A stretch of DNA of 64,000 nucleotides from Mobula hypostoma. Its lineage: Eukaryota. The notes beneath the pieces were generated by a model. That model worked only from the letters and a program-made list of their open reading frames with translations. It had not been told where the DNA came from and ran no database searches. Position 1 is the first letter of the stretch. Every line of letters starts with the position of its first letter. Made by a program: the position numbers and the translations under genes. The stretch lies in contig NC_086127.1 of NCBI RefSeq assembly GCF_963921235.1, forward strand, positions 6,944,001-7,008,000, given 5' to 3'. Below, piece after piece: positions 1,046 to 40,854 of this stretch.

Positions 1046-1112
1046 ATGCTTGGAGCATTTTACCGTGCTAGCAAGATATATTACATGATCATCGCTGTTA
1101 TTGGCGTTCCTG
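1046..1112 (+). CDS. GPR139-like GPCR gene A, exon 1 (MLGAFYRASKIYYMIIAVIGVP, phase-1 intron)
   Basis: ATG at 1046, donor G|GTAAG at 1112/1113; encodes the first half of TM1 and splices in frame to exon 2. Confidence 0.85.
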
Positions 1113-2457
1113 GTAAGCTCACAGGCGAACTAATATCTGCAACTCTGAGCGTGCGGTCTTCGGACGGATCACTTAACGACAGCGTTGTGATGCCGGTGTA
1201 TCAGTGATTGTGGTCCAGACATTGTGACAAAACTATCTGTTCGTTCAGAAGTTGCCTTGCTGACAAGTCTGTGGCCTCGGCTGAAACTAAGCTGGCAGTT
1301 GAAACAGATGTTGAGTGGACGATCGGCAAAGTGGATTCATCAATACGAAAGTGCTGGCAAAGTAAATTCCGATAATCCAGAGACCTCGTCACCTTTGCGA
1401 ATTACTTGGTATTATTCCGTACCAATAGTTGAATATGCTTTAAATTCAAATTAAAAGATATAGCGCTGTACTTTAAAAATTGCTGCAAGCTTGAAGGGAA
1501 CGGGGAAGTGCTGGCATCACTCGTGAGTTACACTCTGAACCATCAGGAGTTCTGAACATTAAAAACAAGAAGTGACTTTGAGTGTTTTAGAGTACCAGGG
1601 TTTGTTTCCACGCCCCGTTATCCGTGCAGTGAAGAGGAGGTTAGGTGCCAACCCAGCAGTGTCCGCTAGAGGTCAGGCGTGTTATGGTTCATGCGATACT
1701 TCGCTCTGATACAATAAACATTGAACTATTGAGAATAATGTTTCAGTAATTTGAAGCAACCCCTAAACGAGGCAGTTGTTTTGAAGTACCTATATCGTCT
1801 TTCCTTTGGAATTGGATGTTTGAAGATCCAACGTGCCAAATAGATGAACGGTCCCTAGCGTCAGGCAATATCCTTGAAAGCTAAAACTGGAGCTGACTGA
1901 TCAGATACTTTGACATAATGTGAAGGAATGCGGTCAGGATCAGCTGCAGAATTTAAAAAGAAGCGAGGCAAGCGGGCCCCTTGTGGGCGGCGAACAAACG
2001 GGTCGAGGAGGAGGAGACAAAGACACGCGATTGAGAAAAATAAATGTACGGAGGCGAAGGAGCCGGGGCTCAGCTGTATGCACAGAGTGACAGAACATAG
2101 GCGACGGGAACGGGGGAATCAACATCGCGGGCAACGTTGCCGAGGTATTCGGGCTATATATATTAGTAAAGAACCTGATGGTGGGAGATTTATGTTGATT
2201 TCTTCAATCCGCCGTTGGTGATCAGTTGACAATGCTTTCTTCCCAAATCCTGCTCATCGGCCAGTACCGTGTGTCGTATACTTTCACCCAGCATGTACGC
2301 GTTAGAGGCAACCGCGGTTCCAGCTTTACACCTTTGAAACCTGGAGAAATAAGTTGTCTGCAAAGTTTGATTGTTGTCAATACTCAGCTTATTTCTCCCC
2401 CGAGTCTCACCGAGCGGCGTGACAGTAATTCCCTTATTATTGTTACTGTTCCCCCAG

Positions 2458-3317
2458 AGAACTTAGTGGCGATTGTGATCCTGTCCCGGGAAAAGTGCGG
2501 CCTCTCCACCTGCACCACTCGCTACCTGGTTGCCATGGCAACGGCTGATCTACTATCCATCATCTTTCAAGTCATCTTGTGGCGGATCAGTTATATTTAC
2601 TTCCCCGGGACTTTCCTAGACATCACCCCCGTATGCAGTATGATCTCCGTCCTGGGACTGGCTGCCATAAAATGTTCTGTCTGGTTCACCGTCACTTTCA
2701 CGTTTGACCGTTTTGTCACCATCTGCTGCCAGAAGCTGAAAGCCAGGTACTGCACCGGGAAAACTGCGGCTCTGGTTCTGACAACCGCAGGCGTTGTGTT
2801 CTCTTTTAGCAACGTACCCCACTTCTTTATATACGAACCCCTTAAAGTGACCGACAATATACCCTGGGACTGCATTCGAAAGCCGAGCTACTATACGGAT
2901 CCCGGCTGGCTTGGATACAGGTGGCTTTCTACCGTTATAAACCCATTACTCCCGTTCGCGTTGATACTACTGTTCAACGGTCTGACAGTTAGGCATATTT
3001 TAGTGACTAGTCGCGTACGGAAGGGGCTGATAGGTCAGAAAAAGGCGGAAAACCGGAATGACCCGGAGATGGAGAGCAGGAGGAGGTCTGTAATCTTACT
3101 TGTCACCATTTCCGGAAGCTTCATCATCCTGTGGTCGGCAGATGTTGCCGAATTCCTTTATAACACCATTGCTGGACTGAATCAACATGAATACAACTCC
3201 TCAGAATACATATTTGAATACACCTCAGACTTTCTGCTGCTATTAAGTTGCTGCACAAACACATTTATTTATGGGGTGACTCAGTCCAAGTTCGAGAGCA
3301 GTTCATCGGCGCAGTGA
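2458..3317 (+). CDS. GPR139-like GPCR gene A, exon 2; 1-bp deletion truncates helix 8 and the C-tail (possible pseudogene)
   Basis: Acceptor cccccag| at 2457; motifs ATADLL, TFDRF, FIILW, CCTNTFIY; ttc-gagagc here vs ttcagagagc in gene D; ancestral stop TAA at 3365-3367. Confidence 0.85.
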
Positions 3318-3869
3318 AATATCCGCTCACGTCAATTATTCAACTAGTTAATAAGCAAAATATCTAAGTTATTCCCGGAGTTACTCTCAGTGTTTTCCAT
3401 CCTGACACCCACAGAACCAGCGATCATCAGAGAACATGTCGAGAATAAAATTGGTTCAGAGCCCGAGAGAGACACGAAACAGGAACGGAATGCCCGTCAC
3501 CCGCAGCCCGCGACCTCCACTTCCTACCAACTATTAAACTTATCCGAACTTTTATTTTCATATTTTTCACCAGATTCCCGATCTCGTCACCGCCACGTTC
3601 AGTTTGATAATGACAGAGCGGGCCAGGATCGGGGGCATTCAAAACCAAGTCGGCGGAAATTTAACTCTGCATTACTGTAAAGTCTTGCAGAGGGATGAAA
3701 CGAAAAATAAAGTCAATAGTTCACACGAACTCACAGTAAACCTTGCACTTGTCCTTCGCTTTCGATGAACGTGTTTGGAGAAATGCTTAACACTACTCGG
3801 GCACTGCTCTCCCAGTTATGCAGATTTCCATGGGAAGCCCCAATGCCGACACTGCTTCAGGGAAAGAAT

Positions 3870-4843
3870 GTCACCTCACTTCCTGATTTCTAATAAATTT
3901 CCATCAGAGAAAACTAATTGTTGAATCTCCTGTGCATTTCGTCCGGTATGTTTATTATTTTAATTCTCAACTAAATCTGAGAAACCTTGACGCGCCGACA
4001 TAGACAAGAACACTCGTTTCTCAATTGCAGTGACCTTTCAAGCGATTGTAGTCGTGTTTATTATTCCGGTTTACATAAATATTGCCGTGTGCCCAATTGT
4101 TTAATGTTATTCTGTAGTGTCTCTGCGTGAAATCAGATGTAGATTTTACAACTGAGACATGTTCCATCGTCTTCCAATTCCCCCCTTTCACGTCAGCATA
4201 TTTCTGGTTGTTATCACTTCCCGATTCCTGTGCGTTGTCTGCGTTTGGACTGGCCATTCCAATTAAGTAAGTTGTTCTTGCTTGTTTATCCTGTGATATT
4301 ATATCCGGACGGGTATCATGTATTGCCCTATCTCTAATAATGGATCGGTCGTCATATAATTATAGGGCTCTGACTCTAAAACTAGATCAGGATTCTATTA
4401 ATAGCAATATATAGTATCTTCCATGAGTTTGCATCTTAAAGCAAGTTTTTGTTGAATCTCCTTAGTATTCACCGAGGAAAATCACATGGTTACTATTAGT
4501 ATTATTATTTCTCGGCTAAATCTGATAAACACTGACTTGCGGAGATAGCCAAACTCACTCATTTCTCTATTGACAGGGACTTTCAGACTGTTCCAATGCT
4601 GCTTCGTATTGAGGCTTTCTGGAGATTCACAGGAGTGTTATAGCCTAGGTTTAATTGTTGAATGTTACCGTGCAGTGACTTCGGAACAAAACCAGTTGTA
4701 GACGTTACAATTGCGGCAATATATACACAGTTCACGTCGACAGTCTTTAAATTTCCTCTTTGAAGTCTGCATATTTCAGGTTTTCTTCACTGATTGATTG
4801 CAGAATGTTGTGTGTATTTGGAATAAAGATATCTATGAAGTAA
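3870..4843 (-). mobile_element. Degenerate R4/Dong-like LINE fragments, locally tandem-duplicated
   Basis: Similar to 15390-15780 and to 41370-42950, where RLE-LINE protein motifs can be read. Confidence 0.45.

Positions 4844-5438: not shown

Positions 5439-5488
<50 letters not shown>
5439..5488 (+). repeat. (CTAT)n microsatellite
   Basis: About 12 perfect units. Confidence 0.97.
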
Positions 5489-5489
<1 letters not shown>

Positions 5490-6676: not shown

Positions 6677-6746
6677 ATGGGATACCCAGCGGTTTACGAC
6701 ATCGCGGCTGTTTTCTACCCTACCCTTGTAGCGATTGGCGTCCCGG
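6677..6746 (+). CDS. GPR139-like GPCR gene B, exon 1 (MGYPAVYDIAAVFYPTLVAIGVP)
   Basis: ATG at 6677, donor G|GTAAG at 6746/6747; same GVP phase-1 junction as the paralogs. Confidence 0.85.
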
Positions 6747-7361: not shown

Positions 7362-8260
7362 TTAATTTAACGGCGATTGTGATCCTCTCTCGGGGAAAAT
7401 GCGGACTCTCCAGATGCATCACCCGTTACCTGGTTGGAATGGCAACAGCGGATCTGATGGTGGTTATCGTCGTTGCTTTCGTGGAACAGGTCAACTATAT
7501 CTACACTTATTCCAGATACCTGCTCATCACTCCTGTCTGCGCGCTGACAGTTGTACTCAGGAATGTAACGATGGACTCTTCTGTTTGGTTTACGGTCAGT
7601 TTTACCTTCGATCGCTTCATCGCAATATGTTGCCGAAAGCTGCGGGAGCGATACTGCACCGAGGGAACAGTGACGGTGGTGATCGTGACCGTGGTTATAG
7701 TGAGCTGCGGGAAATGTGTCCCGTTTTATTTTGCCGTTGAACCTTACGCCATCATTGACAACACGCCGTGGCGCTGCGTCTTCACACTGGAATACGCTAC
7801 TTCACCCGTGTGGAAAATATTCGAATTGTTGGACAGCATTTTAACACCGCTGCTACCAATCGGCTTAATTCTAGTGTTCAATGTGTTAACAGTGAGGCAT
7901 ATCATTGCGGCAAATAGAGTCCGCAGAGGACTACGGAACAACGGCGATAATCAGAAGGATACCGAGGTGGAAAATCGTCGGAAATCGATGATATTGTTGT
8001 TTGCTATATCAGCTAATTTCATATTATTCTGGATGCCCTATGTCGCCCGTTCTCTGAAGTGGCAATCTCAAAACTACTTTTATCAGGACAGACATTTGAA
8101 TTCCCCGGTATATATCCTACAGCAGTTTGGGTACATGTTGCAAATCCTCAGTATGTGCACCAATACTTGTATCTATACACTGACACAGAGGAAATTCAGA
8201 AAAGAGCTCAAAAATGGAATGAAGAATGTCTTTACATTAAATGGCCATCTGTGTAGATAA
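7362..8260 (+). CDS. GPR139-like GPCR gene B, exon 2 (spliced protein 322 aa, intact, divergent subfamily)
   Basis: Acceptor tttcttgcag| at 7361; reads VNLTAIVILSRGKCGLSRC..., TFDRF, FWMP, CTNTCIY; AATAAA at 8296-8301. Confidence 0.92.
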
Positions 8261-16570: not shown

Positions 16571-17303
16571 GTCATAGTCATACTTTATTAATCCCGGGGG
16601 AAATAGGTTTTCGTTACAGTTGCTCCATAAATAATAATTAGTAATAGAACCATAAATAGTTAAATAGTAATATGTAAATTATGCCAGTAAATTATGAAAT
16701 AAGTCCAGGACCAGCCTATCGGCTCAGGGTGTCTGACCCTCCAAGGGAGGAGTTGTAAAGTTTGATGGCCACAGGCAGGAATGACTTCCTATGATGCTCA
16801 GTGTTGCATCTCGGTGGAATGAGTCTCTGGCTGAATGTACTCCTGTGCCCACCCAGTACATTATGTAGTGGATGGGAGACATTGACCAAGATGGCATGCA
16901 ACTTAGACAGCATACTACTTTCAGACACCACCGTTAGAGAGTCCAGTTCCATCCCCACAACATCACTGGCCTTACGAATGAGTTTGTTGATTCTGTTGGT
17001 GTCTGCCACCCTCAGCCTGCTGCCCCAGCACACAACAGCAAACATGATAGCACTGGCCACCACAGACTCGTAGAACATCCTCAGCATCGTCCGGCAGATG
17101 TTAAAGGACCTCAGTCTCCTCGGGAAATAGAGACGGCTCTGACCCTCCTTGTAAACAGCCTCAGTGTTCTTTGACCAGTCCAGTTTTTTGTCAATTCGTA
17201 TCCCCAGGTATTTGTAATCCTCCACCATGTCCACACTGACCTCCTGGATGGAAACAGGGGTCACCGGTACCTTAGCTCTCCTCAGGTCTACCACCAGCTC
17301 CTT
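16571..17303 (-). mobile_element. 5'-truncated Rex1/Babar-type LINE (RT C-terminal region plus 3' UTR, (ATGACT)n tail)
   Basis: ORF 16716..17294 YKYLG..ID.KLDW...RLYF.RRLRSF...SHPLH...SFLPVAIKLYN; AATAAA and tail. Confidence 0.88.
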
Positions 17304-17687
17304 AGCTCCTTTTCCATAGGACGTCCCATGGAAAAGGAGCTTTAGAATTGAACCGAAATGCCAATAATGTAAATATTACATTCAAGGTAGAGGAAGTAAC
17401 TCACTGCGAGATAGTTAGCAGTGACATTTAATTGTAGACACGGGACAGTTTTATTCGCTCTACGTGGAGGTGCATCGGGGTAACCGGCGGAATTTCAGAG
17501 CTTGCCCGGTTGAAAGTGTATTGAGGCGTGTATGTGCGTTTAGTCGTCCTGCATTACGTTAGGATTCTATGAACGAAATCATGCGTTTGATGGAAAGATT
17601 TGTGCAGAATTGTTGAACAGACAAATATAATTTAAGATAAACAATTTACAAACATTAACTTCATTTCAGCTTCCATGTATTTGTGTT

Positions 17688-17690
<3 letters not shown>

Positions 17691-17760
<70 letters not shown>
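17691..17760 (+). repeat. (GT)n microsatellite
   Basis: About 34 units. Confidence 0.97.
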
Positions 17761-21471: not shown

Positions 21472-21556
21472 ATCATGTTTATTTTTACCCCAGCGGTTGG
21501 AAAACACAGCAGCTACGTGTAGTGTTCAATAATCAGTCTGCTGGAGCGGGTATAAA
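21472..21556 (+). promoter_or_regulatory. Proximal promoter of receptor gene C, TATAAA at 21551-21556
   Basis: Aligns with the gene A and D promoters; TATA about 95 nt before the ATG. Confidence 0.6.
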
Positions 21557-21646
21557 TTAATGACCGGAGACAGTCGTCAGCTCAGAGTTGTTCTTTCTTT
21601 CAGCGAGTTGGCGGGCGGCTGGACGACCGGCGGAATCTCACACAAC

Positions 21647-21713
21647 ATGCTTGAAACGTTTTACAGTGTGAGAAGAATATTTTTCCTGATCATTGCCGTT
21701 ATTGGTGTTCCTG
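21647..21713 (+). CDS. GPR139-like GPCR gene C, exon 1 (MLETFYSVRRIFFLIIAVIGVP)
   Basis: ATG at 21647, donor G|GTAAG at 21713/21714. Confidence 0.88.
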
Positions 21714-23040
21714 GTAAGAACGAACGTTTACAGTTCTGTGTGTCGGGTCTTTGGGCTCGTTCAGTTACCGACAGCGTTGTGATCCTGGTGAAGACATTGT
21801 GACAAAACTCCGTGTTCGTTCAGAAGTTCCCCGAAGTAAAATCCGAGACCGCGGCTGAAAATGAAAACGCAGTAGAGATAGATACAGAGAGGAAGATATG
21901 GGAGATGGGTTCATTTTAAGGATTCACGGCAAGCAGTTTTGGTTTATCAATGCAACACCCACTGTCAGAGTAACCTCCGATAATCCTGTGCACTCGGCAA
22001 ATTTACTCGGTATTATTCCTGATTGATAGCAAATTAAATCTATTGCGCACTATTTTAAGAAATTGCTGCAGGTTCAACTGGAACGCGAGAAGCGAATCCC
22101 CGGAGAGATTCAGGAGAGAGCAATAGACATTACGTGTGAGTTCGACTCCGGTTCTTCGGGAGTTTCGAAAATGCAAATAAGGATCTGATTACGTTCTAGT
22201 GCAGCGGGGTTTGTTTCCACGGCCGATTATCCGTGAAATGGAGGGGCACCTAGCGGTGTCCACTAGAGGGCGGATGGGGTAAAGTACATGAGATACTCTG
22301 CTCTGGAACGGAAAACATCAAACCATTTAGACTAATGCTGCGGTAATTTGGAGGAACCCCTAAACGAGGCAGATGTTTTGAAGTGCCTGTATCATCTTTG
22401 CTTTAGAAACTGGATGTTTTAATCATTAACATGCAAAGTACCTGCAACTTTCAGCGGTACAGGTCGAACCATTAAAATCGAAAACTGGAACTATCTGACA
22501 GAGTGTGAAGGATTTCCGACCAAGAGTCGTTGCAGAATTTAAAAGAAGCGAGCCAAGCAAGGCCACTGTGTGTAGGTAACAAACGGGGAGTCGAAGACAA
22601 TTGAACGGGAGAACAGAAATCGCTTTGAAATTTGTCAATGACCAGAGGCGAAGGGAGCGGGGGTTTGCCGGTGTGCTGAGTCTGCCAGACTATAGTTGAC
22701 GGGAACGCAGCAATCACTGTCGCTGAGAATGTTACCGAGGTTGCTAACGTTGGTAATCTTGCGAAAACCTGATGGTGGGAGATTTATATTGATTTCTCCA
22801 AAGCGCACTCGGCGATCCATTGACAAGACCTACGTCCCAAGCGCTACTCCTCTTGCAGTGCCGAGGGCCGCACTCTTTCACCAAGGATGCACTCGTCTGA
22901 AGTGTCTGCGCACCCGGCTTTACACCTCTTAAATCTCCAGAAATGTGGTTTGTTTGTTCTCAATTTCCAGATTATCTCTGTATTGAGACCCACAGCCGAG
23001 AGCCGGAAATAAACTTGCTTTTTTTTCGCTGTTCCCTCAG

Positions 23041-23951
23041 TGAATTTAGTGGCGATTGTGATCCTGTCCCGGAGAAAGTGCGGACTCTCCTCCTGCACCA
23101 CTCGCTACCTGGTGGCCATGGCAACGGCGGATCTACTCGCCGTCACCTTTGACGTCGTACTGTGGCGGGTGAGTTATTATTACTTCCCCGGGACTTTCCT
23201 GGACATCACCCCCGTGTGCAGTGCGACCTCTGCCCTGGGACTGGCCGGCACAGAAAGTTCTGTCTGGTTCACCGTCACTTTTACGTTTGATCGCTTTGTC
23301 GCTATCTGTTGCCAGAAGAGAAAATCGACATATTGCACCGGGAAAATTGCGGCTGTGGTTCTGACATCAACCGGCGTTCTGCTCTGCTTTAAGAATGTGC
23401 CCCATTTCTTCAGATATCGTCCTGTGAAAGTGGTTGGCAATATACCCTGGGACTGTATTCGAAGGCCTGGCTACTATACTGATCCCGGGTGGTTGGGATA
23501 CAGAATGTTTTCTACCGTTCTAACGCCATTACTCCCGTTCATATTAATACCACTGCTCAACGCTCTGACAGTCAGACACATTCTAGTGACGAGTCGCGTT
23601 CGTAAGGGGCTGAGGGGTCAGAACAAGGAGAAGAACGGCAGTGATCCGGAGATGGAGAGCAGGAGGAGATCTGTGATCTTACTTCTCACCATCTCTGGAA
23701 ATTTCATCATACTGTGGTCGGTAAATGTTACCGAATACCTTTATAACAGCAGTGCTGGACTGGATCAAAATAATTACAACGATGCAGAATACATAGTTGA
23801 ACAGTCCGGATACATGCTGATGATATTAAGCTGTTGCACAAACACGTTTATTTATGGGGTGACTCAGTCCAAGTTCAGAGAGCAGTTCATCAGCGCAGCG
23901 AAATATCCGCTCACGTCAATTATTCAGCTGGTTAATAAACAAAATATCTAA
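23041..23951 (+). CDS. GPR139-like GPCR gene C, exon 2 (spliced protein 325 aa, intact)
   Basis: Acceptor ttccctcag| at 23040; TM1b-TM7 plus helix 8; TFDRF, CCTNTFIY; AATAAA at 24033-24038. Confidence 0.92.
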
Positions 23952-24979
23952 GTTATTCTCAGAGGTGGTCGCAGTGTTTTCCATCTCGACACAACAGAAC
24001 TGTCGGTGATTGGAGAACATGGCAGCCGGGAGAATAAAACTGGCTTGGACCCCGAGAGAGACACACAACACGGGAACAAACCCGTCGGCACCCGTGACCT
24101 GCGCCCTCCACCTCCTGCCAATTATTAAACGTATCCTACATTTTTTTTTTCACCAGACTCCCCCTCTCGTCACCGCCAAACTCCTTTCGATAGTGAACCC
24201 CGCACCCTGGCGTAAATGTGCAGCCATCAACTGAGCTGAAAATACGTGGCTGCTTCGTGACGGACAGAGAACGGAGCACCTCGCGGAAATGCTGCCATTA
24301 CAAGGAGAACGGGAGAGTTCACGCTGAGCGCCCCGGAATTCAATCTGGTCTGAGCCGTGCTCGGAGTGAGCAGGCAGTGCTGTAAAGACAGTTAACTCAC
24401 CACGTCCTTCAACCTGCAATAAGCAGACAACATCCGCGAGAACAGAGACCTTAACTCAGTCCTCTCAGTATTAACACCTTATGGAGCGGCGGTGGCTTGA
24501 AAGAGAGCAGAATCTGCAGTTGTGTCGGAGGAGCACACTGTGAATGCAGTTCTCTACTATAGTCTCACTGTACCCTGGTGTTTTTGTGTGTTTGGTAGTG
24601 TGATGAGATTTCACCCTGATCCGTGTTCTCTGCAACCCTCAGTTCAGTGTTTGACACCCAATACATCCGGCACTGAATCTCCTTTTCATGCGTGTCTGAC
24701 GGAAACGTGAGCAGAATTGTGTTTGAATGTGCAAAATCAGACAACAATTCATTACAACAACTAAAATACAATAACCACTTCAATCAATAAATAAGCAGTA
24801 AATCGCCACATTCCATCCATTTCAAACTTTATGCATATATATTTATTAATCGCTAGTTCACAGTCATTGTACGTATTTATCGTATATATTGCACGTCGCC
24901 CTGCAGGAAAGAGTATCCCAGTCCCAGAGCATGCTGGGTAGAGATGTCTGCGTGAGTTCAAGTTCAAGTTGGAGCCAAG

Positions 24980-25340
24980 CATATTTTAGTGGCCAGTCGA
25001 GTCCGTAAGCGCCTAAGGGGTCAGAACAAAGAGGAGAACATTATTGACCCGGAGATGGAGAAGAGGACGAGATCTGTGGTTTTGCTCTTCACCCTCTCGG
25101 GTAGTTTCATCCTCCTGTGATTGACGTATGTTTTAAATGTCACCTATTATCAGACCACAGGCACAGCAACAGATTTCAGTGATTCTGAATGGATCTTCAA
25201 CCAAGTCGGGATTTTCCTGAGCACCTTCAGCTGCTGCACGAACACATTTATTTACGCCGTGACTCAATCCAAGTTCAGGAAGCAGGTGAAGATCGCGGTG
25301 AAATATCCGCTCAGCTCAGTACTTCGGTTCATTAATAAAG
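24980..25340 (+). pseudogene. GPR139-like pseudogene fragment (ICL3-TM6-TM7-helix 8 only)
   Basis: HILVASRVRKRLRGQNKEENIIDPEMEKRTRSVVLLFTLSGSFILL*LTY...CCTNTFIYAVTQSKFR; TGA replaces the TM6 Trp at 25118-25120; TM1-TM5 absent. Confidence 0.9.
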
Positions 25341-26559
25341 CCGCGCACTGTGGTACCCCGAGGCTGCCGCAGTGTCGCCTGCCCAAACTCCAGCTTCCCA
25401 CATGTCAATCTGATCTCCCAGACGCCTGTCCTGAGCTTACAGTCCCATTGAACGCCAGTTACGTGAGATCCGACTATCACAGCGCTATCCGTTAAATTTC
25501 TCCAATAGTCCCATCTCCTTTCTTAATGGGAAACGTTGTGTAATCTCTGAGCCATGACCGATAATAAAGTCTCCCTCCGCCCTCGGGACCACCTTGCATA
25601 AGGTCTACTGTGGGACAAAATATTACCAACTCTCCCTGCCCTGGGTCTGTTCAAATGTGGAATTGTCGCTGAAACCAGCTGTATTGATCTCGCTCTGCGA
25701 TGGGGAATATCATCCAGTAGACTCCTCACTGCTTTAAAATATCCCATCACCCTGGGCTGTGGGTAGATGGCGAGCGCAAGCTTCACATCACGATAAATTG
25801 ATCAGCTCCCGACAGTGGGGGCACTCTGGTCAATAACTCGCCTTGTGACCAGCAGTCCAACTCCTTATTGTGGAGTGCCCGAACAGAAATTTCACCCTCC
25901 AAGCGATAGCTGTAATTGCCATGAATAGCGATGAACGACTTGGCGTTAGATCCACGTCCGGGTCCTTATTTCGCATCAATCTCTTCACGGAACACACTCG
26001 GGTGCAAGCTTCTCAGTGCAGAATTCAGCTCCGAGTCTTCCCCGCACTAGGGCAGTCGTGGTGTAAACTCAATTCTGGGGAGAATTCACCTCAGTGTCGG
26101 GACACCTCACGCGTTAATTCTGCCTTATCAGTAGTTTAAACAAGTCGCAGTGTGGTCCCCTGGTATAACCTTCCCCCGGGACAGGTTCTCCAATCTCCCT
26201 CCTGGGTGTATTCCAACTCTTATAATCATCCCCATCACAGCCGGCATTTATTCCAGACACAAAGACAGACCATTGCTCTTACCGATCTTCTCTCACCAAC
26301 TGATTTCCAAAGTTAACAAGTGCACATTCAGTTACATCAAACACAGTGCACGGTCTCCCACGCTTCACACCGCACCGTTGCCAGGCCCCTGGCCAGGCCA
26401 GTCCTTCTGCCGTTTCTGAACAATAAATGTGTAACTTGGGGCTGTTCTGGATGGAGCCGGAAAGTGGTGGATGACAGGAGGGGAGAGATCTGAAGTGAGA
26501 AGCTATCAGGGGGAACACCATTGAGTTGGGTATTGGTGATAGGCAAATGCCCACCCTCA

Positions 26560-27050: not shown

Positions 27051-29769
27051 TGTCACGTGACCGGCAACGATGAATCTAGAATTGGGTAGAGTGAGGGTTT
27101 ATAATACAATCAAACATTTATTAAACTCTGCTCAATATATAAAAGATAAACAAACGAAAATGTTAACCGGAAGTTAAGTGCTATGCGGCCATTTAACTGC
27201 GGGTCCAGCACTTTTGTACCTTACAATAGATCGAAAAACTCCGTTTTAAATCGGAACTGCGTCATAAGGCAAATACGTAATGGAGCGGAGTCTCTGGCTA
27301 ACGTTCTCACTGGAACACTAATGCGTCACCAGGGGTCTACACTTATATACCTAGTGGTAACAGGTCATCACGTGACCTCACATCGGCGGGAAAATTACAT
27401 TAGGTGACCGCCAAAACACCATTGCATCATCCTCATAAGCCAGTCACAAGGTATCCCTGAGGTATGTAACACCTCCCTTTAAAAAATTGATCTTTTAGGT
27501 GGAAAAAATGTATAAAATGACAACACACAATATCATCATACAGCACCTTACAAACTATTATACAGTAGGAGTGTTACAGAGGTTAAAATCTCACTGTATA
27601 AAATTTAATTACATGGTACATTTAACATATAGATAGAGAATCAGCGATCACATTATCTTTACTTTTAATATGAGTAGTCAAAATATTATACTCCTGTAAC
27701 ATTAAACTCCAATTTAATAATCTTCTATTTTTGCTTTTCATCTTTATTGGCAAATATACATCGGGAAAAACTGGTCCACCTGCTAAGTCATTCCTTAAAG
27801 GTAGAGCAACATCATTTACAGGTAAACTGGGTTGTAGTCCTATTTTAACAACCCCTGTAATTAACCCTGACCTTAAATTTACTCCATGTAAATGTACAGG
27901 CGTAAGGGCACTCCCAACTCCTCTTGTATAGTTTACTTTATCAATGTCAGACTCATCACTAAACTTTAGATCACTGTCTAACATTAGTGATTGAGAAGCT
28001 CCAGTATCTCTAAGTTTTCTTATTGGTACAGGATTGAATCCCGCTTTCAAGGATACAAATCCTTCGGTTATAAAGTGTTCATATCCCCTCTTAACTTGGT
28101 CGGACTCTGACAAACCTTCATTAGTATTTATCAAACTCTATGAATTTACAGGTGTTTTAATTTGCTGCACACAAGCAGCTAGGACTGCTTCCTTCTCTTT
28201 CTTTTTCAATCGATAACAGTTAGCTATTACATGTCTAGGTTTCTCACAATCATTACAAATAACATCAAAACGTCTTTCCTTCAAATGTCTCCCTTCATCC
28301 TTACCTTGATCACTAACTTCAGATTTAATTTCTGGTTTACCTTGACTCTCTGTGCTATTTTTCCTTTTAAAAGTCCTACCAGGAGGAAATTTATTGTTAT
28401 GAATTAAAGTATACTCATCAGCTAATTTAGCAGACTCCTGCAACGTAGCAGTGTCCCTTTCATTTAAGTATGTCCTCACTTCAAAAGGAATGCTCCTTTT
28501 AAATTCTCTCAGCAAAATCAACTCTTTTAATTTATTATACTCCCCATTCACATTTTTAGAGCAAATCCATCTTTCAAAACACATAGATTTCTCGGAAGCA
28601 AATTCCACGTAAAAGTTTTCCACAGATTTCTTCAAATTTCTGAATCTTTCTCTCTGCGCCTCCGGAACCAACTCATACGCCTTCAATATATGCTGCTTCA
28701 CAGTATCATAATCAAGTGCTTACTCAGCATTTAAAGCTGTATAAACTTGTTGTGCTCTCCCTTATATTCAACTCTAACATGACTGGCCATTACTCTTTCG
28801 GCCACTTTAAACTCGGAGCAAGATTTTCGAAATGTGGAAATATTTATCCACTTTTGTCTCAGTAAATGGAGAAGCCAAAATAACCTCACGATTCGCTGCA
28901 AACTGCTTCCTAGAACCAGAGGACTGATTCTGGGACTTCAATTTCTCCATCTCAAGAATTGAATTGAGTCAGGTTTTATAAAACAATCAAACATTTATTG
29001 AACTCTGCTCAATATGGAAAAATAAACAAATTCGAAAATCTTAACCGGGAGTTAACTGCTATGCTGCCATTTAACAAACCGCCACTCAGTACTAGTTCTT
29101 AAAGCGATAAATGCAAACACAGGTCTTAGAATGGTAAATTCGAAAGTCCAAGAGATTTATACAGTCAATTAGGAGAGACTTTCCTGAAGTAAAGAATTCC
29201 TCAAAGACCTGACGTCACGCCAGTCCCAGCCGGATCCTGCCTTGTCCGCAGGATCACGACGACGGAAATAAAACGGTTTAAAGGCACTGACAGTCCCTCT
29301 GGATAATAGATCCTACGCAGCCTTTTCTGCCGCTTTTAGCAGAGGCTATCTCATGCAAATTACTCTTTCTTGAACGAATTCAATAATGGTCGATCCTTTC
29401 AACCGTCGAACGACTCCTTCAGGTTCCTGTCTTCACTCTCCAATACTACTGAAAAGATACATCAACAAACCTGGCAGAAATTGGTTAAAGTGCCGGTCCA
29501 GCGCTTTTGTACCTTACCATAGAATGTAAAACTACGTTTTAAATCGAAACTGCGTCATAAGGCAAATACGCAATGGAGCGGAGTCTCCTGCAAGCGTTCT
29601 AACTGGGAAACTAACTGCGTCACCAGGGGTCTACACTTGGTCTACTAGCTGGTGGTAACAGGGCATCACGTGACCTCACATCGGCGGGAAAATTACATCT
29701 GGTGACCTCCAGAGCACCATTGCATCATCCTCATAAGACAGTCACAAGATATCCATGAGGTATGTAACA
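27051..29769 (-). mobile_element. Internally deleted Gmr1-like Gypsy LTR retrotransposon
   Basis: LTRs at 27051-27471 and about 28955-29769 (TGTTACATA start); PPT aaagggagg abutting the 3' LTR; gag with zinc knuckle CNDCEKPRHVIANC (28138-28701); protease RDTGASQSL and RNase H end RLLNWSLMLQEY..H....NVIADSLS (27622-28134). Confidence 0.85.
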
Positions 29770-30327: not shown

Positions 30328-32251
30328 AGTCATAGTCATAGTCATACTTTATTGATCCCGGGGTAAATTTGTTTTCGTTACAATTGCACCATAAATAATA
30401 AATAGTAATAGAACCATAAAGAGTTAAATAGTAATATGTAAATTATGCCAGTAAATTATGAAGTAAGTCCAGGACCAGCCTATTGGCTCAGGGTGTCTGA
30501 CCCTCCAAGGGAGGAGTTGTAAAGTTTGATGGCCACAGGCAGGAATGACTTCCTGTCACAGTGGCGGGGCATTTGGAGCAATGGTGGACCTAAATGCAAG
30601 ACACATCTTGTGAGGTTAAATAAATTTAGTTTATTGTTCGATATCAGGAGAGCTAGGCAGGAGTAGGAGTAGCGAACTAGACAAGGACTGAGGACTATGA
30701 CTAGGCTGGGACCAAGGGTCTGAGCTGGGACTCGGAATCGACTCCCAGAACCAGAGGAGACATGAAGAGGCTAGAGTATGGACTCTGAGCCCGAGGCTGG
30801 GCAAGGACCCAGTACGTGGGTCTTGCCTCCGGCTAGGACCCCAGAACCAGGCATGGACATGACATGGGCTAGGGAGAGGAGCAACATGGAAAACAGAGCC
30901 TTGGTCTCGGGAGACCAGGTACATGGAACCATGGACACATACACAGAACACAGAGTCGGCACCCCTCCTTGGGTTCAGGACATAGGGCCGGGACTCCCAC
31001 ACAGAACAGAGAGCTGGGACCCCTCCTTGGGTACAGGACATAGGGCCGTGACTCATGACCCTCCGCCGGGCAACGGCAAGACGGCCTGACTTACCCCACG
31101 TAGTCGAGGATAAGACAAGACAAGACCAACACGAATGAACACCAGACAGTACCTACCTAGCTCCGGTGATGGAACTAGACCGAAGTGCAGGTGGGGGCTG
31201 CAGGCGAGAGGAGCAGAGAAGGGATTCAGACGGGGGGTGTGGGGTAGGACAGGAATCACAGCCCGCTAGGATCAGGACTTGACTTGGTACTTGGATGCCG
31301 CCGGAGCCAGGACTTGGTGCTTGGAACCTCCGGGTAGTGCCGAGCTCTCGACTCGGCCCGGGAACAGTAGACAGCGGCTCTTGATTCTCTCCGGCCGGAT
31401 AACTGACGGATCCACCTTGATGAGGAAACTTTGCAGGCTTGCTTCGGCGAGGTAACTGGACTGGGTTGTTCCGGTGAGGAAAGGCGAATTACCGGCACTC
31501 ACTTCGGGCGGAGACTAGGTTTGCTCCGGCCAGATGACATTGGCACGCCGTGACCTTGCAGCCGCTTCCGCCCCGAACGGCTGAAAGGCGGAGACTATAA
31601 ACTACCCGTTCAGCCGCGTGTTAATTGCCTCTAATCACCAAAGTCGAGGGACACGGGAAAACAGGGAATCAACGGTCCGGATCGTAACATAAACAAGCTA
31701 AATTTAAAGGGACCCCGATCCGGACCATGACACTTCCTATGGTACTCTGTGCTGTATCTCGGTGGAATGAGTCTCTGGCTGAATGTACTCCTGTGCCCAA
31801 CCGGTATATTATGTAATGGATAGGAGACATTGTCCAAGATGGCATGCAACTTGGACAGCATCCTCTTTTCAGACACCACTGTGAGAGAGTCCAGTTCCAT
31901 CCCCACAACATCACTGGCCTTACAAATGAGTTTGTTGATTCTGTTGGAGTCTGCTACCCTCAGCCTGCTGCCCCAGCACACAACAGCAAACATGATAGCA
32001 TTGGCCACCACAGAATCGTAGAACATCCTCAGCATCGTCCGGCAGATGTTAAAGGACCTCAGTCTCCTCAGGAAATAGAGACGCCTCTGACCCTTCTTGT
32101 AAACAGCCTCAGTGTTCTTTGACCAGTCCAGTTTATTGTCAATTGGTATCCCCAGGTATTTGTAATCCTGCACCATGTCTACCCTGACCCCCTGGATGGA
32201 GAGAGGGGTCACTGGTACCTTAGGTCTCCTCTGGTCTACCACCATTTCCTT
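30328..32251 (-). mobile_element. 5'-truncated Rex1/Babar LINE split by a solo LTR
   Basis: 30328-30553 plus 31733-32251 reconstruct a copy closely similar to 16571-17303. Confidence 0.88.
30554..31732 (-). mobile_element. Solo LTR (TGTCA...GGACCATGACA family)
   Basis: TG...CA; perfect 5-bp TSD CTTCC (30549-30553 and 31733-31737); empty site visible in the paralogous LINE near 16785. Confidence 0.9.
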
Positions 32252-32514
32252 AGGAGACAGCAGAAACAATAGTTAAGACGTTTCCAGCTGATCAGTAGCT
32301 CTTAAACATCAAATATTCTGTATTTCAATGAAATATATCATGTCAACTTGTTCATATCAGGATAAAGAAAGTTATAATTTGAATTGAAACAAAACTGAGA
32401 TGATATCACGTTAATATGTATTCTGTTCGCAAAATGTCAGTATTTAAAGTCATCAATAATATGATAGTTCCAACAATAAAAAGTTAGCATTTACGTATCA
32501 CTTAGTGTTTCTGT

Positions 32515-33546: not shown

Positions 33547-36500
33547 CAGAAACCGTGGATGAACATAGAAGTTCGCCTCCTGCTCAAAGCCAGGGATTCA
33601 GCCTTCAGGTCTGGAGATCGGGAGGCTTACATCTCAGCCCTGGCGAAGCGGAGGAGGGGAATCTCTCAGGCTAAACACACATGCAAACAGCGAATCGAGG
33701 AGCATATGGCATGGCATACAGATTATTACCGACTTCAAACCACCTAGTACTATGCCCCCTTCCAGCTCTGCTTCACTCCCTGATGAGCTCAATTACTTCT
33801 ACGCTCGCTGTGACCGAGAGAACAAGGAAGTCACCCTCAAAGCAGATCTCCCACCTGGTGAACCGCCTCTCTCACTTTCCACCTCCGATGTTTGCGCCAC
33901 CCTGAGCAGCGTGAATGTACGGAAGGCAGCTGGTCCGGATGGAATACCTGGCTGTGTGCTCAGAGTCTGTGCAGGGCAGTTGGCCGGGGTCTTCACGGAC
34001 ATTTTCAATCTGTCCCTGGCCCAGGCAGTTGTCCCCACAAGCTTCAAGATTGCCACCATCGTGCCGGAGCCGAAACATTTCACTGCCACGGACCTGAATG
34101 AGTTTAGCCCAGTTGCACTCACCCCCATCATTGCAAAGTGCTTTGAGAGACTGGTTCTATCCCATCTGAAATCTTGTCTGCCCACTACCCTGGACCCCCA
34201 TCAATTTACCTATCGCACCAACAGGTCAACAGATGATGCCATCTCCACGCACATCACTCTGCCCTGACCCACCTGGACAGCCCCAACTCTTACAACAGAA
34301 TTATGTTCATTGACTTTAGTTTGGCATTCAATACCGTGATCCCCTCCGAGCTGATCGCCAAACTTCGCCAGCTTGATATCAGCTCATCCCTTTGCAACTG
34401 GATCTTGGACTTTCTGACTAACAGACCCCAATCAGTTAAGTTAGACATCCTCTCCTCCTCCACTCTCACCCTCGACACCGGCTTGCCTCAAGGCTGTGGG
34501 CTGAGCCCTCTTCTGTACTCCCTTTTCACCTATGACAGCGTTCCTGTACATGGCTCTAACTCCATAATCAAGTTCGCAGCCGACACCACGGTGGTTGGTC
34601 TGATCAGAGTGGATAACGAGACGGCCTACAGGAACGAGGTCCAGCACCTGGCCGTGTGGTGTGCCGACAACAACCTGGCCCTTAACACCCAGAAGACCAA
34701 GGAGATCATTGTGGACTTCAGGCATGCTAGGAGCCACACTCACGTCCCCATCTACATCAACGGAACTGTAGTGCAGCGTGTATCAAGCTTCAAATTTCCT
34801 GGTGTCCACATATCCGAGGATATCAGCTGATGCTGAACTTCTCCATCCTGATCATAAGCGCCTTCATTTCTTGCGGAACATGAAGAAAGCTCAACTCTGT
34901 CCCAGGATACTGAAGGAGTTTTACCGCTGACACATTGAGAGCATACTCAAAAACTGCATCTCAGTGTGGTATGGCAATTGTCCCGTATCGGACCGCAAAG
35001 CATTCCAGCGTGTTTGTGAAAACTGCCCAGAGGATGATCGGCACCCAATTGCTCACCATCGAGAACATCTACCATAAACGTTGCCTGGGCAGGGTGAAAA
35101 GCATTATGAAGGATGCATCTCATCCTAACCGTGGACTTTTTACTCTCCTCCTGTCATAAGGGCGGGGGGGGGGAGGTATGTGTGTGGTGGGGGGAGGCGT
35201 TGATGGCGGAACCAAATGCAAGGCACAGACACTGAGCTACTCGGAACAGGACTAGGATTATCAAGGTAACAAGGTGTGACAGGAAGAACCGATGCTGGAC
35301 ATGGCACAGGCCCTGGATGCAGCTAGGATATAGGGCCAGGGCTAGGACTAGACTAGGAAAGCGGTATCTGGACGAAGAACTAGGAACTTGGAACCTGGAG
35401 AAGGAGTCCGAGCCAGAGACTGGCTAAGGACCCGAAACCTGGGTCTTGACTCGGGCTCGGACCCCGGATCTTGACGAGGACATGACGTGGCTACAGGACT
35501 GGTCGAGACATATAGACAGGACGGGAATACAAAGCCTTGACGTGGACAGGACTTGGACTAGACGAGGTTCTTCGACGAGGCTTATACTAGACAGGGTTCT
35601 TGGACTTGGCTTGGACTAGACGAAGTTCTTGGACAGGAGGAGAGACTCCAGGACGGGACGAGGGAATTGCAGCACGGGGCTGAGCGAGAAAACGAAGCCT
35701 TGATTTGGTCGAGGGAGAGACAGGAACGCAGGGCCTTGGTCGAGGAAGATACAGGAACGGAAAGCCTTGAGCCTTACTGTTCTTAGGACACAGGAATGCA
35801 GAACACAGAGCCTTGATCCTGAGAGACAGGATCATGGAACACAGAGCCGGGACCCCTCCTTTGGAACAGGACGTAGGGCCGGGACTTATACACATAACAC
35901 AGACCCGGGACTCCTCCTTGGGAACAGAACGTAGGACCGGGACTTATACACAGAATGCTGAACACAACGAGACAGTTCCAAATACTAGGTAGCGGCAAAC
36001 GGCCGGACCAACCTAGAGACGGCGTGGACACAGAGACAGTTCAAAACAACGATAGACAGTTCCTTATCTTGCTCCGGCGGTTGAACTTGACAGCGGTGCA
36101 GGCAAAGGTTGCAGGCGAGGTTTACAGGCGAGCAAGGCTTCAGGTGAGGCAAGGCAAGGAAAGGCTTCAGGCGAGGCTTCTGGAGGAAGGTGAAGGGAAG
36201 GGAAGGGCTTCAGACATGGAACAATCCAGCCGCCAAGCCCTGGTCTCCGGAGGTATTTACTTGTCTGTCCAAACGAGAATCATGTGCCTGAATTAGAGCA
36301 CCCAACAGAACAATGGAAAACCTGGAATAAAGATCGATAGACCGGACCGTGAACAGGAATGCGGACTTCACGGAACGGACCATGACACCTCCCATCCGGT
36401 AGGCGCTACAGGAGTCTCCGCTCCCGTACCAGCAGGCACAGGAATTTTTTCTTCCCTCAGGCTGTGACACTGTTGAAACTCACATCACAGCGCTAAGCAG

Positions 36501-36705: not shown

Positions 36706-38531
36706 TCCACATCCACACCTTCATTGAGGTTTGAACTTCCATTTCCCTGCCCTGCTCTACATCAGCGCTCCCGAGAACCCCGTCACTCTTTGTGTATATT
36801 CCAGCCGAACTCATCTACGGACGGGGCTCAGCATTCACCTGAATTTTGATTCGTTTCTGCTCCTCTCTGTCCATCTGACAAACTGATCAATTTCACCCCA
36901 TAACGAGTGACCAATTTGCCCATTATTGCAACGGGTATCCGGACAGAGTGAAATCTGACCTGCCAGTCGGTTTAGACCATAAATGCATCGAGGCAGCACG
37001 TCATGAAGAAGAAACAGAATATGTAACTTTGTGTTGTATTTACAGTGACAGTGCGGTTCAGGCTATCAAATATGTAAATAGAAATATCTACTGCACTGTC
37101 AACAATGATATCAAATTAGTGCATCGGCAAAACAATTATGGTTGTTGTTACACATAAAATGAATGGAGATCTCTGTCGGCTTTTGCATTTGCACCGATGC
37201 GGGGGTCACCTATACGGTGATTGAATTACTTTGGTGGGAGTTGTTTTCCCTGTGAAGAACTGCATGAATTTGATGTACATACAAAATGCTGGCTCAGCAG
37301 GACAGGCACATCTGTGGAAATGATCAGAATGCTGGCGATCGCTGAACTGGGCAGCAAAGGGAGGGACAAGATGCCAAACTAAAAAAGGACGTGGGAGGAG
37401 GAGGACAGGAACCTGATAGGCGAAGGCCGGTGCGGGGGAAGTGGGGTGGGCGGCGTGGCGAAACAAGTGGCTGGGAGAGAGTAAGTGGAAAAGTTAAAGA
37501 GCTGGAGAAGACGGAATCTGACTGGAGAGGAGAGTGGTTCAAGGGAGAACGGGAAGGGGGAGGGAGAAAGAGAAAGAGGACGTGCACCGGCCGGGGGGTG
37601 GTGACAGGCAGGCGAGGAGAAGAGTAGGAGGGCAGAGCGGGGAAATGAAGAAGATGGAAAGAAGCGGTGACCCATCTGAAGATAAAGATATCCACGTACA
37701 TGCCATAAGATTGGAGGCCATGTAGAATATAAAGTGTTATTACTCCCGCGTGATAGTGGCCTTATTTTCGTGGCAGAAGAAGAGGCCTTGGACCCACATG
37801 TCGGACAAGGAATGGGGATAGGAATTGAAATGGCCGGCACTGGGAAATTCCGCTTTTTGTGGATGGAGCTGAGGTGGTCGAAGACGTGTTAATTAAATTG
37901 AAGAATTATCTGGGCCGCAAAATGTCGAATGTTTATTTGTTTCCAAAGATGCTGTTTAATCTGCTGAACTCCTCCAGCATGTTGTATGCACTGCAATGAA
38001 TTTGATGCGTTCAGTATGTTCGGAAGCTTGGATGCTATTTTAGTTTGAGGCTAATTACTATATTACAGGAAAGTATCAAAATTCTTTTGTATTGCTACTG
38101 CAAGACCTATAACCGAGACAATTCCCAGATTGAAACAGAGCAGCCGAATGACGGTATAGCATTGGTCTATGATGACAAAGTCCATGGAACCGAGGAATGG
38201 ACAGGATCAACAATAACGATCATGAAGCTGAGAGGTGAGCCTGAGAGAGTTTCGCCACAACAGTCCCTGACTTCTCAGATCGTCATTTCTTCGTCTTTCA
38301 TATTTTGGAATTTCATGTCATGCTCTGCATACCTCCTCACAATTGGGATTTTACTGGAATGACAGCATGTTTATTTTTATCCCAGCTGTTGGATGACGCG
38401 TCAGCCTTGTGCAGTATTGAATTATCAGTGTCCTGAGCGAGTATAAATGAGTGACCGAGGAGATTCGTTAGCTCAGATTTTCTTCAGCGGGATTGTGAAC
38501 AGTTGGAAAGACAGGCTGAGCCTCAGACAGC

Positions 38532-38598
38532 ATGCTTGGAGCATTTTACCGTGCGAGCAAGATATATTACATGATCATCGCTGTTATTGGCGTTCCTG
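38532..38598 (+). CDS. GPR139-like GPCR gene D, exon 1 (MLGAFYRASKIYYMIIAVIGVP)
   Basis: ATG at 38532, donor G|GTAAG at 38598/38599; TATAAA at 38442-38447. Confidence 0.88.
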
Positions 38599-39943
38599 GT
38601 AAGCTCACAGGCGAACTAATATCTGCAACTCTGAGCGTGCGGTCTTCGGACGGATCACTTAACGACAGCGTTGTGATGCCGGTGTATCAGTGATTGTGGT
38701 CCAGACATTGTGACAAAACTATCTGTTCGTTCAGAAGTTGCCTTGCTGACAAGTCTGTGGCCTCGGCTGAAACTAAGCTGGCAGTTGAAACAGATGTTGA
38801 GTGGACGATCGGCAAAGTGGATTCATCAATACGAAAGTGCTGGCAAAGTAAATTCCGATAATCCAGAGACCTCGTCACCTTTGTGAATTACTTTGTATTA
38901 TTCCGTACCAATAGCTGAATATGCTTTAAATTCAAATTAAAAGATATAGCGCTGTGCTTTAAAAATTGCTGCAAGCTTGAAGTGAACGGGGACGTGCTGG
39001 CATCACTCGTGAGTTAAACTCCGAACCATCAGGAGTTCTGAACATTAAAAACAAGAAGTGACTTTGTGCGTTTTAGAGTACCAGGGTTTGTTTCCACGCC
39101 CCGTTATCCGTGCAGTGAAGAGGAGGTTAGGTGCCAACCCAGCAGTGTCCGCTAGAGGTCAGGCGTGTTAAGGTTCATGCGATACTTCGCTCTGATACAA
39201 TAAACATTGAACTATTGAGAATAATGTTTCAGTAATTTGGAGCAACCCCTAAACGAGGCAGTTGTTTTGAAGTACCTATATCGTCTTTCCTTTGGAATTG
39301 GATGTTTGAAGATCCAACGTGCCAAATAGATGAACGGTCCCTAGCGTCAGGCAATATCCTTGAAATCTAAAACTGGAGCTGACTGATCAGATACTTTGAC
39401 ATAATGTGAAGGAATGCGGTCAGGATCAGCTGCAGAATTTAAAAAGAAGCGAGGCAAGCGGGCCCCTTGTGGGCGGCGAACAAACGGGTCGAGGAGGAGG
39501 AGACAAAGACACGCGATTGAGAAAAATAAATGTACGGAGGCGAAGGAGCCGGGGCTTAGCTGTATGCACAGAGTGACAGAACATAGGCGACGGGAACGGG
39601 GGAATCAACATCGCGGGCAACGTTGCCGAGGTATTCGGGCTATACATATTAGTAAAGAACCTGATGGTGGGAGATTTATGTTGATTTCTTCAATCCGCCG
39701 TCGGTGATCAGTTGACAATGCTTTCTTCCCAAATCCTGCTCATCGGCCAGTACCGTGTGTCGTATCCTTTCACCCAGCATGTACGCGTTTGAGGCAACCG
39801 CGGTTCCAGCTTTACACCTTTGAAACCTGGAGAAATAAGTTGTCTGCAAAGTTTGATTGTTGTCAATACTCAGCTTATTTCTCCCCCGAGTCTCACCGAG
39901 CGGCGTGACAGTAATTCCCTTACTATTGTTGCTGTTCCCCCAG

Positions 39944-40854
39944 TGAACTTAGTGGCAATTGTGATCCTGTCCCGGGAAAAGTGCGGCCTCTCCACCTGCA
40001 CCACTCGCTACCTGTTTGCCATGGCAACGGCTGATCTACTATCCATCATCTTTCAAGTCATCTTGTGGCGGATCAGTTATATTTACTTCCCCGGGACTTT
40101 CCTAGACATCACCCCCGTATGCAGTATGATCTCCGTCCTGGGACTGGCTGCCATAAAATGTTCTGTCTGGTTCACCGTCACTTTCACGTTTGACCGTTTT
40201 GTCACCATCTGCTGCCAGAAGCTGAAAGCCAGGTACTGCACCGGGAAAACTGCGGCTCTGGTTCTGACAACCGCAGGCGTTGTGTTCTCTTTTAGCAACG
40301 TGCCCCACTTCTTTATATACGAACCCTTTAAAGTGACCGACAATATACCCTGGGACTGCATTCGAAAGCCGAGCTACTATACGGATCCCGGGTGGCTTGG
40401 ATATAGGTGGCTTTCTACCGTTATAAACCCATTACTCCCGTTCGCATTGATACTACTGTTCAACGGTCTGACAGTTAGGCATGTTTTAGTGACTAGTCGC
40501 GTACGGAAGGGGCTGATAGGTCAGAAAAAGGCGGAAAACCGGAATGACCCGGAGATGGAGAGCAGGAGGAGGTCTGTAATCTTACTTCTCACCATCTCCG
40601 GAAGCTTCATCATCCTGTGGTCGGCAGATGTTGCCGAATTCCTTTATAATACAATCGCTGGACTGAATCAACATGAATACAACTCCTCAGAATACATATT
40701 TGAATACACCTCAGACTTTCTGCTGCTATTAAGTTGCTGCACAAACACATTTATTTATGGGGTGACTCAGTCCAAGTTCAGAGAGCAGTTCATCGGCGCA
40801 GTGAAATATCCGCTCACGTCAATTATTCAACTAGTGTATAAACAAAATATCTAA
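39944..40854 (+). CDS. GPR139-like GPCR gene D, exon 2 (spliced protein 325 aa, intact)
   Basis: Acceptor ttcccccag| at 39943; TM1b-TM7 plus helix 8 KFREQFI; AATAAA at 40931-40936. Confidence 0.92.

Follow-up and report, generated by a model that had tools for sequence, protein, structure and literature searches.

Sharks and rays have a reputation for a keen chemical sense. In genome surveys of these animals, OR, TAAR and ORA genes were very few, TAS2R genes were lacking and the V2R set was modest, and these small repertoires have been read as discrimination traded for sensitivity (PMC6368271, PMC10116579). The surveys of shark chemoreceptors covered known families only (PMC6368271, PMC10116579), and because only known families were searched, a family private to chondrichthyans would have been missed. 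Here we describe a family of class A (rhodopsin-like) G protein-coupled receptors (GPCRs) represented in a 64-kb stretch of the Mobula hypostoma genome (hereafter, the window), which contains no N. Based on a tblastn search with the longest open reading frames (ORFs), five copies of one protein family lie on the same strand between about 1 and 41 kb, and no further copies were detected in the rest of the window. Four of the five are complete two-exon class A genes (referred to as c1, c2, c3 and c5), and c4 is a 3' pseudogene fragment.

A preliminary description of this DNA had recognised five same-strand paralogs in 40 kb, which correspond to c1 to c5, and had proposed that they belong to an unrecognised receptor family. 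No published description of the family was found in full-text literature searches, nor in the main shark chemosensory and genome papers checked, and to that extent the proposal stands; however, RefSeq already annotates the genes and names them "probable G-protein coupled receptor 139". The family is an undescribed, lineage-specific class A receptor repertoire, the individual genes of which are annotated and automatically named.

A receptor family of cartilaginous fishes

The long ORFs of c1, c2, c3 and c5 matched Pfam 7tm_1 with 70-84 bits against a cut-off of 30.5 (E-values of 1e-19 to 1e-23). An AlphaFold2 model built on 88 relatives (pLDDT 73.5) showed seven transmembrane (TM) helices, a beta-hairpin in extracellular loop 2 (ECL2) and a long helix 8. 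About 22 positions were invariant over the 88 sequences, including A50, D53, D106, R107, C161, W248 and N290, and N24, C82 and Y294 were nearly invariant. The class A microswitches N1.50, D2.50, DR[YF] at 3.49-3.51, W6.48 and N7.49-x-x-x-Y7.53 are present together with the C3.25-ECL2 disulfide, and the prolines P6.50 and P7.50 are absent from the family. These receptors are members of class A. When N24 is taken as 1.50, TM1 begins at about residue 4, leaving an extracellular N-terminus of about 3 residues without a glycosylation sequon, as had been described. The intracellular motifs quoted in the same description (KCGLSxCxTRYL, TFDRFxxICC, RVRxGL, DxExExRRxS and TQxKFR) were all found in the window copies.

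Among receptors of solved structure, GPR139 (PDB 7VUG and 9M42) was the best match of the family profile, with 59.5 bits (E = 3e-15) over positions 11-310, and the next solved receptor followed at 36.8 bits, a gap of 23 bits. Human GPR139 was also the best match of c3 alone, with 45 bits over TM1-3 only. Foldseek aligned rat GPR139 with 19% identity, and the overall identity to GPR139 is about 19-25%. The likeness is distributed along the receptor: G-[VL]-P-x-N-[LI]-L-x-[IV]-x-ILS in TM1, YL-x-A-x-A-x-AD in TM2, S-x-W-x-TV-x-T-x-DR[FY]-x-A-x-C in TM3, LFTI-x-S-x-F-x-x-LW in TM6, and N-x-F-x-Y without proline at 7.50, followed by S-[KR]-FR, in TM7 and helix 8. In contrast, GPR139 has a longer N-terminus and is a single conserved gene, whereas hundreds of copies exist here; the pocket positions are hypervariable in the chondrichthyan family, and its true sister is a gene of amphibians and sturgeon. 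We take F3.33, H5.43, R6.51 and N7.38 to be the ligand-contact residues of GPR139, and on this assumed list 3.33 and 6.51 rank among the most variable positions of the family. Judged from these alignments, GPR139 is the nearest characterised relative, and the chondrichthyan genes are not GPR139 orthologues. The label "GPR139-like" used in the preliminary description is thus apt for the nearest solved receptor and the TM signatures, but it names a remote relationship between separate clades.

Other comparisons were less specific. A Foldseek search against Swiss-Prot models returned generic peptide receptors, with GPR139 only in ninth place, and does not discriminate among them. Neighbours in the protein atlas carried automatic names only. 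Language-model and structure neighbours included clusters named "FMRFamide receptor-like", recalling the invertebrate FMRFamide-receptor-like and Srw expansions, and Pfam gave weak Srw and Srx matches. This resemblance is weak and confined to the level of features, and no tree or E-value puts the family within those groups.

To describe the extent of the family, we counted proteins at E<=1e-5 and obtained 2,222 with c3 and 2,146 with c2 as the query, a family size of about 2,200 proteins as counted at 90% clustering. The best 120 matches of the c3 search were all named elasmobranch proteins, mostly "probable G-protein coupled receptor 139". Every named match among the best 120 of the c2 search was likewise from an elasmobranch, and seven were metagenome or read-assembly proteins without a name. 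When the 50%-identity representatives were scanned exhaustively with HMMER, at least 113 clusters reached E<=1e-30; below these, scores dropped steeply, from some 120 bits (30% identity) to some 75 bits, the level of generic class A receptors. Down to 36% identity, the named representatives came from sharks, rays and skates only, plus one member in the chimaera Callorhinchus. In M. hypostoma, the matches in the two top-120 lists comprised at least 29 distinct family proteins on at least 12 scaffolds. The family is chondrichthyan-wide and chondrichthyan-specific, has hundreds of members and grows by birth and death. The preliminary description had supposed a lineage-expanded repertoire of this kind, and the hundreds of relatives in sharks, rays and a chimaera, along with the turnover visible in the cluster itself, agree with it.

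We examined the relationships within the family in maximum-likelihood trees, whose outgroups named "GPR139" (Engraulis P0260 and Branchiostoma P0259) are remote from human GPR139 and which contained no bona fide GPR139 or GPR142. The 44 chondrichthyan rows formed one clade (support 91/80) with a salamander (amphibian) clade as its sister (97/80). Subfamily A, with c1, c3 and c5, was supported at 100/99-100, and subfamily B, with c2, at 100/95-97. Because each holds both sharks and batoids, the two subfamilies, which lie 13 kb apart in the window, split before the divergence of sharks and rays. Several shark lineages branch off more deeply than the Callorhinchus sequence, and by this placement diversification was probably already under way before the chimaera split. 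Proteins of coelacanth and Odontesthes named "GPR139" (30-31% identity) are not claimed here as orthologues of the family; in the trees they took no resolved position among the outgroups and did not group with the family.

The sister gene (P0220 in Pleurodeles, P0418 in Xenopus tropicalis and P0434 in Acipenser, with P0271, P0274 and P0415-P0434 among its records) gave one match per species. In a search with the salamander protein, conservation among amphibians (frogs, a caecilian and salamanders) was 66-74%, and the sturgeon homologue was 46% identical. The next matches after sturgeon were the chondrichthyan family at 32-33% identity, and this search returned no amniote homologue. Taking all searches together, the gene and the family share 30-33% identity, with 135-166 bits. 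The gene resembles the chondrichthyan receptors in its length of about 340 residues and in its motifs, and it too is automatically named "probable GPR139", yet it scores only 53 bits against human GPR139.

Constraint on the ligand pocket and the cytoplasmic face

We compared sequence variability between the two sides of the receptor, with pocket positions set by Ballesteros-Weinstein anchors rather than by coordinates. In subfamily A, the entropy was 1.35 bits in the extracellular half with its loops and 0.50 bits in the intracellular half, which comprises the inner halves of the TM helices and the intracellular loops (ICLs; p = 4e-19). The direction was the same in subfamily B, where outer positions were more variable than inner ones. 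The variable outer half and conserved inner half reported in the preliminary description are thus confirmed. Pocket entropy in the chondrichthyan receptors was 0.98-1.58 bits, compared with 0.28-0.54 bits in ICL3. Although ICL3 usually varies more than any other part of a class A receptor, in this family it is unusually fixed (DPEMESRRxS), and the whole cytoplasmic surface, consisting of ICL1, the DRF region, ICL2, ICL3 and helix 8, is near-identical.

As a control, we used 20 amphibian orthologues of the sister gene from 20 species, with a mean identity of 76% and a divergence comparable to that of the chondrichthyan paralogues. Here the pocket entropy was only 0.17 bits and 33 of its 46 positions did not vary, whereas ICL3 reached 1.19 bits. 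The outer halves of the TM helices (0.37 bits) were less variable than the inner halves (0.54 bits), and ICL3 and the tail were the most variable parts. The invariant pocket of the amphibian gene is strongly polar and charged (N3.29, Y3.32, F3.33, D5.39, Q5.42, W5.46, K6.51, K6.55, E6.58, R7.35 and N7.39) and looks like that of a receptor for one fixed ligand.

Constraint is therefore inverted with the expansion: in amphibians the pocket is fixed and the ICLs vary, whereas in chondrichthyans the pocket varies and the inner face is fixed. Because of this inversion, the ancestor looks like a receptor for one fixed ligand and its descendants look like many receptors with one transducer. The preliminary description had proposed a conserved intracellular face combined with a diversified pocket, and the opposite pattern in the single-copy amphibian orthologues strengthens that proposal. 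Inverted conservation between a single-copy sister and an expanded family is a clear, testable signature, and it gives an evolutionary context to a conserved orphan receptor of amphibians and sturgeon.

Among close paralogues of subfamily A, the canonical pocket accounted for 10 of the 20 most variable sites (3.33, 2.57, 6.51, 4.61, 5.46, 5.39, 6.58, 3.29, 7.39 and 7.43; hypergeometric p = 8e-5), and several other variable sites lay on the ECL2 hairpin. Within the window, c3 and c5 differed at 19 of 46 pocket positions but at only 23 of 144 intracellular positions, and the pockets of c1 and c5 were identical.

The codon analysis consisted of pairwise NG86 estimates on the window copies only, with two region-wise comparisons. 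The ratio of non-synonymous to synonymous divergence (omega) ranged overall from 0.15 (c1 and c5) to 0.40 (c3 and c5). By region, omega was 0.20 in the intracellular half and 0.65 in the extracellular half.

The gene array in the window

The array, which we regard as a portion of one cluster of the family, was inspected at positions 1046-40854, and all its members lie on the plus strand. In c1, exon 1 (1046-1112; 67 nucleotides) runs from the ATG to GVP and the first base of the next codon, with a GTAAGC donor, and exon 2 (2458-3317) completes a frameshifted product of 308 residues. The subfamily B gene c2 has a 70-nucleotide exon 1 (6677-6746) and an exon 2 at 7362-8260, encoding a protein of 322 residues in an uninterrupted ORF. 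Both c3 (exon 1 at 21647-21713, exon 2 at 23041-23951) and c5 (38532-38598 and 39944-40854) have a 67-nucleotide exon 1 and encode proteins of 325 residues; c3 belongs to subfamily A, and c5 is a recent duplicate of c1. The fragment c4 (24974-25339) corresponds to residues of about 200-322, from the cytoplasmic end of TM5 to the tail.

In all four genes, exon 1 ends in GGx GTx CCx G followed by GTAAG, which places a phase-1 intron after GVP. The introns are 615-1345 nucleotides long and end in an AG acceptor, followed by the xN codons, and the rest of the protein is encoded entirely on exon 2. RefSeq models match c3 (P0001) and c5 (P0023) letter for letter and c2 over its N-terminal 285 residues. 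Because P0001 and P0023 are identical to the c3 and c5 models, they provide independent support for the splice structure, including the first exon of 67-70 nucleotides and the phase-1 intron between GVP and xN that had been described for four genes.

A TATAAA box at 956-961 on the plus strand, 90 nucleotides 5' of the c1 ATG, is a candidate core promoter, and homologous boxes begin at 21551 (c3) and 38442 (c5), about 90 nucleotides 5' of the respective ATG. Their presence in c1, c3 and c5 is expected because these are recent paralogues. No TATAAA was found within 300 nucleotides 5' of c2, where the DNA had nothing convincing in common with the upstream DNA of c1, c3 and c5. The window contained no Rfam match.

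The c1 and c5 genes lie in a direct segmental duplication on the plus strand. Its left copy occupies 1-4843, reaching the edge of the window, and may be longer, and its right copy, which carries c5, occupies 37493-42337; the two are 97.5% identical. Between the coding regions of c1 and c5 there are 10 synonymous and 5 non-synonymous changes (dS = 0.048), and with the low omega given above, both copies were therefore constrained for most of the time since duplication. Relative to c5, c1 carries a deletion of one nucleotide between 3293 and 3294, after which the frame shifts beyond TQSKF, and the invariant R302, helix 8 and the tail are replaced by 7 residues and a stop. We take this unverified deletion as real because the site is not a homopolymer, and c1 would then probably be a copy disabled very recently. 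In c4, only the 3' third of the gene is left, 56% identical to c3 and with a TGA at 25118-25120 where its relatives have W6.48; its 5' half was not found in the window. The preliminary description had listed intact genes, a fresh duplicate and a pseudogene side by side, and the duplicate and the fragment c4 are indeed present, but c1 itself is frameshifted.

The RefSeq model of c2 (P0283, 308 residues) departs from the contiguous ORF at the 3' end. After QILS, within TM7, it continues into a downstream exon for 21 unrelated residues, so that the conserved NTxxY and helix 8 are dropped, whereas the uninterrupted ORF of 322 residues keeps both. By this comparison, the contiguous ORF is probably the better model, and P0283 probably reflects an annotation mis-splice or a non-functional isoform.

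The spacers between the receptor genes are filled with retroelement debris. Two copies of a retroelement C-terminal fragment on the minus strand (16716-17305 and 31631-32269; 92.7% identical) match Pfam ALKBH8_N, and an RVT_1 fragment lies on the plus strand between c4 and c5 (33752-34830). On the minus strand, 27622-28701 holds a gag-like ORF with a SCAN domain (187 residues) followed by an ORF of 170 residues without a Pfam match, and from these features it is probably a remnant of a long terminal repeat (LTR)-type retroelement. Downstream of the array, a non-LTR retrotransposon at 51841-54065 on the plus strand has two adjoining ORFs, one for an Exo_endo_phos endonuclease (481 residues) and one for an RVT_1 reverse transcriptase (265 residues). 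Upstream of this element lies an inverted repeat of 369 nucleotides (49550-49918 and 50510-50874; 97% identical). Tandem arrays were found at 20321-20558 (27-nucleotide unit, 9 copies), 43680-44095 (16-nucleotide unit, 26 copies) and 61735-62147 (47- and 136-nucleotide units, 9 and 2.7 copies). The long minus-strand ORFs at 43536-44314 were rejected as genes, being the low-complexity product of the 16-nucleotide array.

Possible functions and comparison with known chemoreceptors

The explanation that we favour begins with one ancestral gnathostome gene, which would have stayed single-copy in amphibians and sturgeon. Among chondrichthyans, the gene would have multiplied by tandem and segmental duplication accompanied by frequent gene death. 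The resulting paralogues would recognise different ligands and feed one common transducer, and specialised cells may use the repertoire for the chemical sensing of external or luminal cues. The inverted pattern of constraint makes a ligand-diverse repertoire with a common transducer highly probable in our judgement. Chemical sensing is the role that suits such a repertoire best, but we offer it tentatively and place it somewhat short of an even chance, and the repertoire and its sensory use taken together appear evenly balanced between right and wrong. A more specific form of this proposal, in which hundreds of GPR139-related receptors in olfactory, oral, gill or solitary chemosensory cells would make up a seventh family of vertebrate chemoreceptors, confined to cartilaginous fishes, seems doubtful. 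If true, it could compensate for the very small repertoires of OR, TAAR and ORA and for the lack of TAS2R, and the belief that these animals rely on few receptors for smell would have to be given up.

Several observations weigh against this explanation. In the codon analysis, omega did not exceed 1 in any region of the window copies, which gives no proof of positive selection, and pocket sites (0.63-0.95) were no more relaxed than outer sites beyond the pocket (0.7-0.8). The enrichment of pocket positions among the most variable sites was absent in subfamily B, and the TM4 anchor used to define the pocket is approximate. In the catshark, the microvillous markers TRPC2 and Go are present in every olfactory neuron, and the olfactory receptors reported are V2Rs, one TAAR and one ORA (PMC10116579), so that a further olfactory family would have little obvious place. 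In addition, three small sequencing runs of the same species, of unrecorded tissue and of an unrecorded molecule type guessed to be RNA, contained a fraction of 0.00-0.02 of the sequence words. Contigs from these runs (at 80% likeness) cover exons 1 and 2 and c4, with none over most of the intron or intergenic DNA. On the receptor exons at 21500-25500 they reach depths of 2 to over 100 and are only 80-95% identical, and because of this low identity they are taken to stem from many paralogues. Some carry paralogue intron, polypyrimidine-tract and upstream sequence and may be either RNA that includes unspliced precursors or DNA, and the single joint between exon 1 and exon 2 is offset by 2 and 3 nucleotides. 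For these reasons, we do not count the contigs as transcription.

One alternative is internal signalling, in which the genes would be expanded neuropeptide or neuromodulator receptors of brain or endocrine tissue, co-evolving with an expanded set of endogenous ligands, and would not serve to detect environmental chemicals. The nearest relatives of the family are peptide and neuromodulator receptors (GPR139, CCKBR, AT2R, PrRPR and the galanin and neurotensin receptors), an ECL2 beta-hairpin with a C3.25-ECL2 disulfide is typical of peptide receptors, and in its conservation the amphibian sister gene resembles a receptor for a single conserved ligand. For GPR139 itself, expression in brain and pituitary is documented (PMC6443882). 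However, vertebrate neuropeptide receptors are few and conserved, in contrast to the hundreds of fast-turnover copies with a hypervariable pocket found here, and an N-terminus of about 3 residues is unusual among peptide receptors. To our knowledge, there is no expanded ligand family that would match the receptor expansion. We regard this alternative as unlikely.

Rapid turnover and pocket diversification would also fit host-pathogen dynamics, and the family could then be a leukocyte or epithelial repertoire for the surveillance of microbial or damage ligands, comparable to the expansions of formyl-peptide or chemokine receptors. Weak PDB matches include CCR5 and CCR2, but chemokine receptors score no higher than many other class A receptors, and we consider an immune or barrier role improbable. 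Even if the receptors proved to be neural or immune, they would still represent one of the largest unexplained GPCR expansions in vertebrates, whereas a sensory role would change the account of vertebrate chemoreceptor evolution.

A different kind of explanation is that the copies proliferated largely neutrally by segmental duplication in transposon-rich DNA, so that relaxed constraint on redundant genes would account for the variability of the outer half. The retroelement fragments between the receptor genes, one frameshifted copy and one fragment among five copies, an outer-half omega below 1 with equally relaxed sites outside the pocket, and the lack of pocket enrichment in subfamily B are all in keeping with it. 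Yet the intracellular half is strongly constrained, some 22 positions are invariant across 88 sequences, and even the recent duplicates c1 and c5 show a low omega. The subfamilies are older than the split of sharks and rays and the family is older than that of chimaeras, and in subfamily A the most variable sites coincide non-randomly with classical ligand-contact positions. Neutral proliferation is very unlikely to be the main explanation. Least of all can the genes be duplicated orthologues of mammalian GPR139 that sense L-Trp and L-Phe, as the RefSeq name and the top PDB match might suggest, since they score only 45-59 bits against human GPR139 with 19% identity in the structural alignment, vary strongly at 6.51 where we assume GPR139 to have a key arginine, and have as their sister the amphibian and sturgeon gene, which scores 135-166 bits against the family and 53 bits against GPR139.

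The ligand-diverse repertoire that we favour can finally be set beside the OR, TAAR, V1R/ORA and T2R families. It differs from them in having no detectable specific homology to any of them and in a coding region split by a conserved phase-1 intron. The likeness to chemosensory receptors would be one of analogy, and it extends to tandem arrays, to birth-and-death evolution with pseudogenes, and to a hypervariable pocket set against a conserved signalling face. The very short N-terminus is likewise a feature of T2R and V1R receptors.

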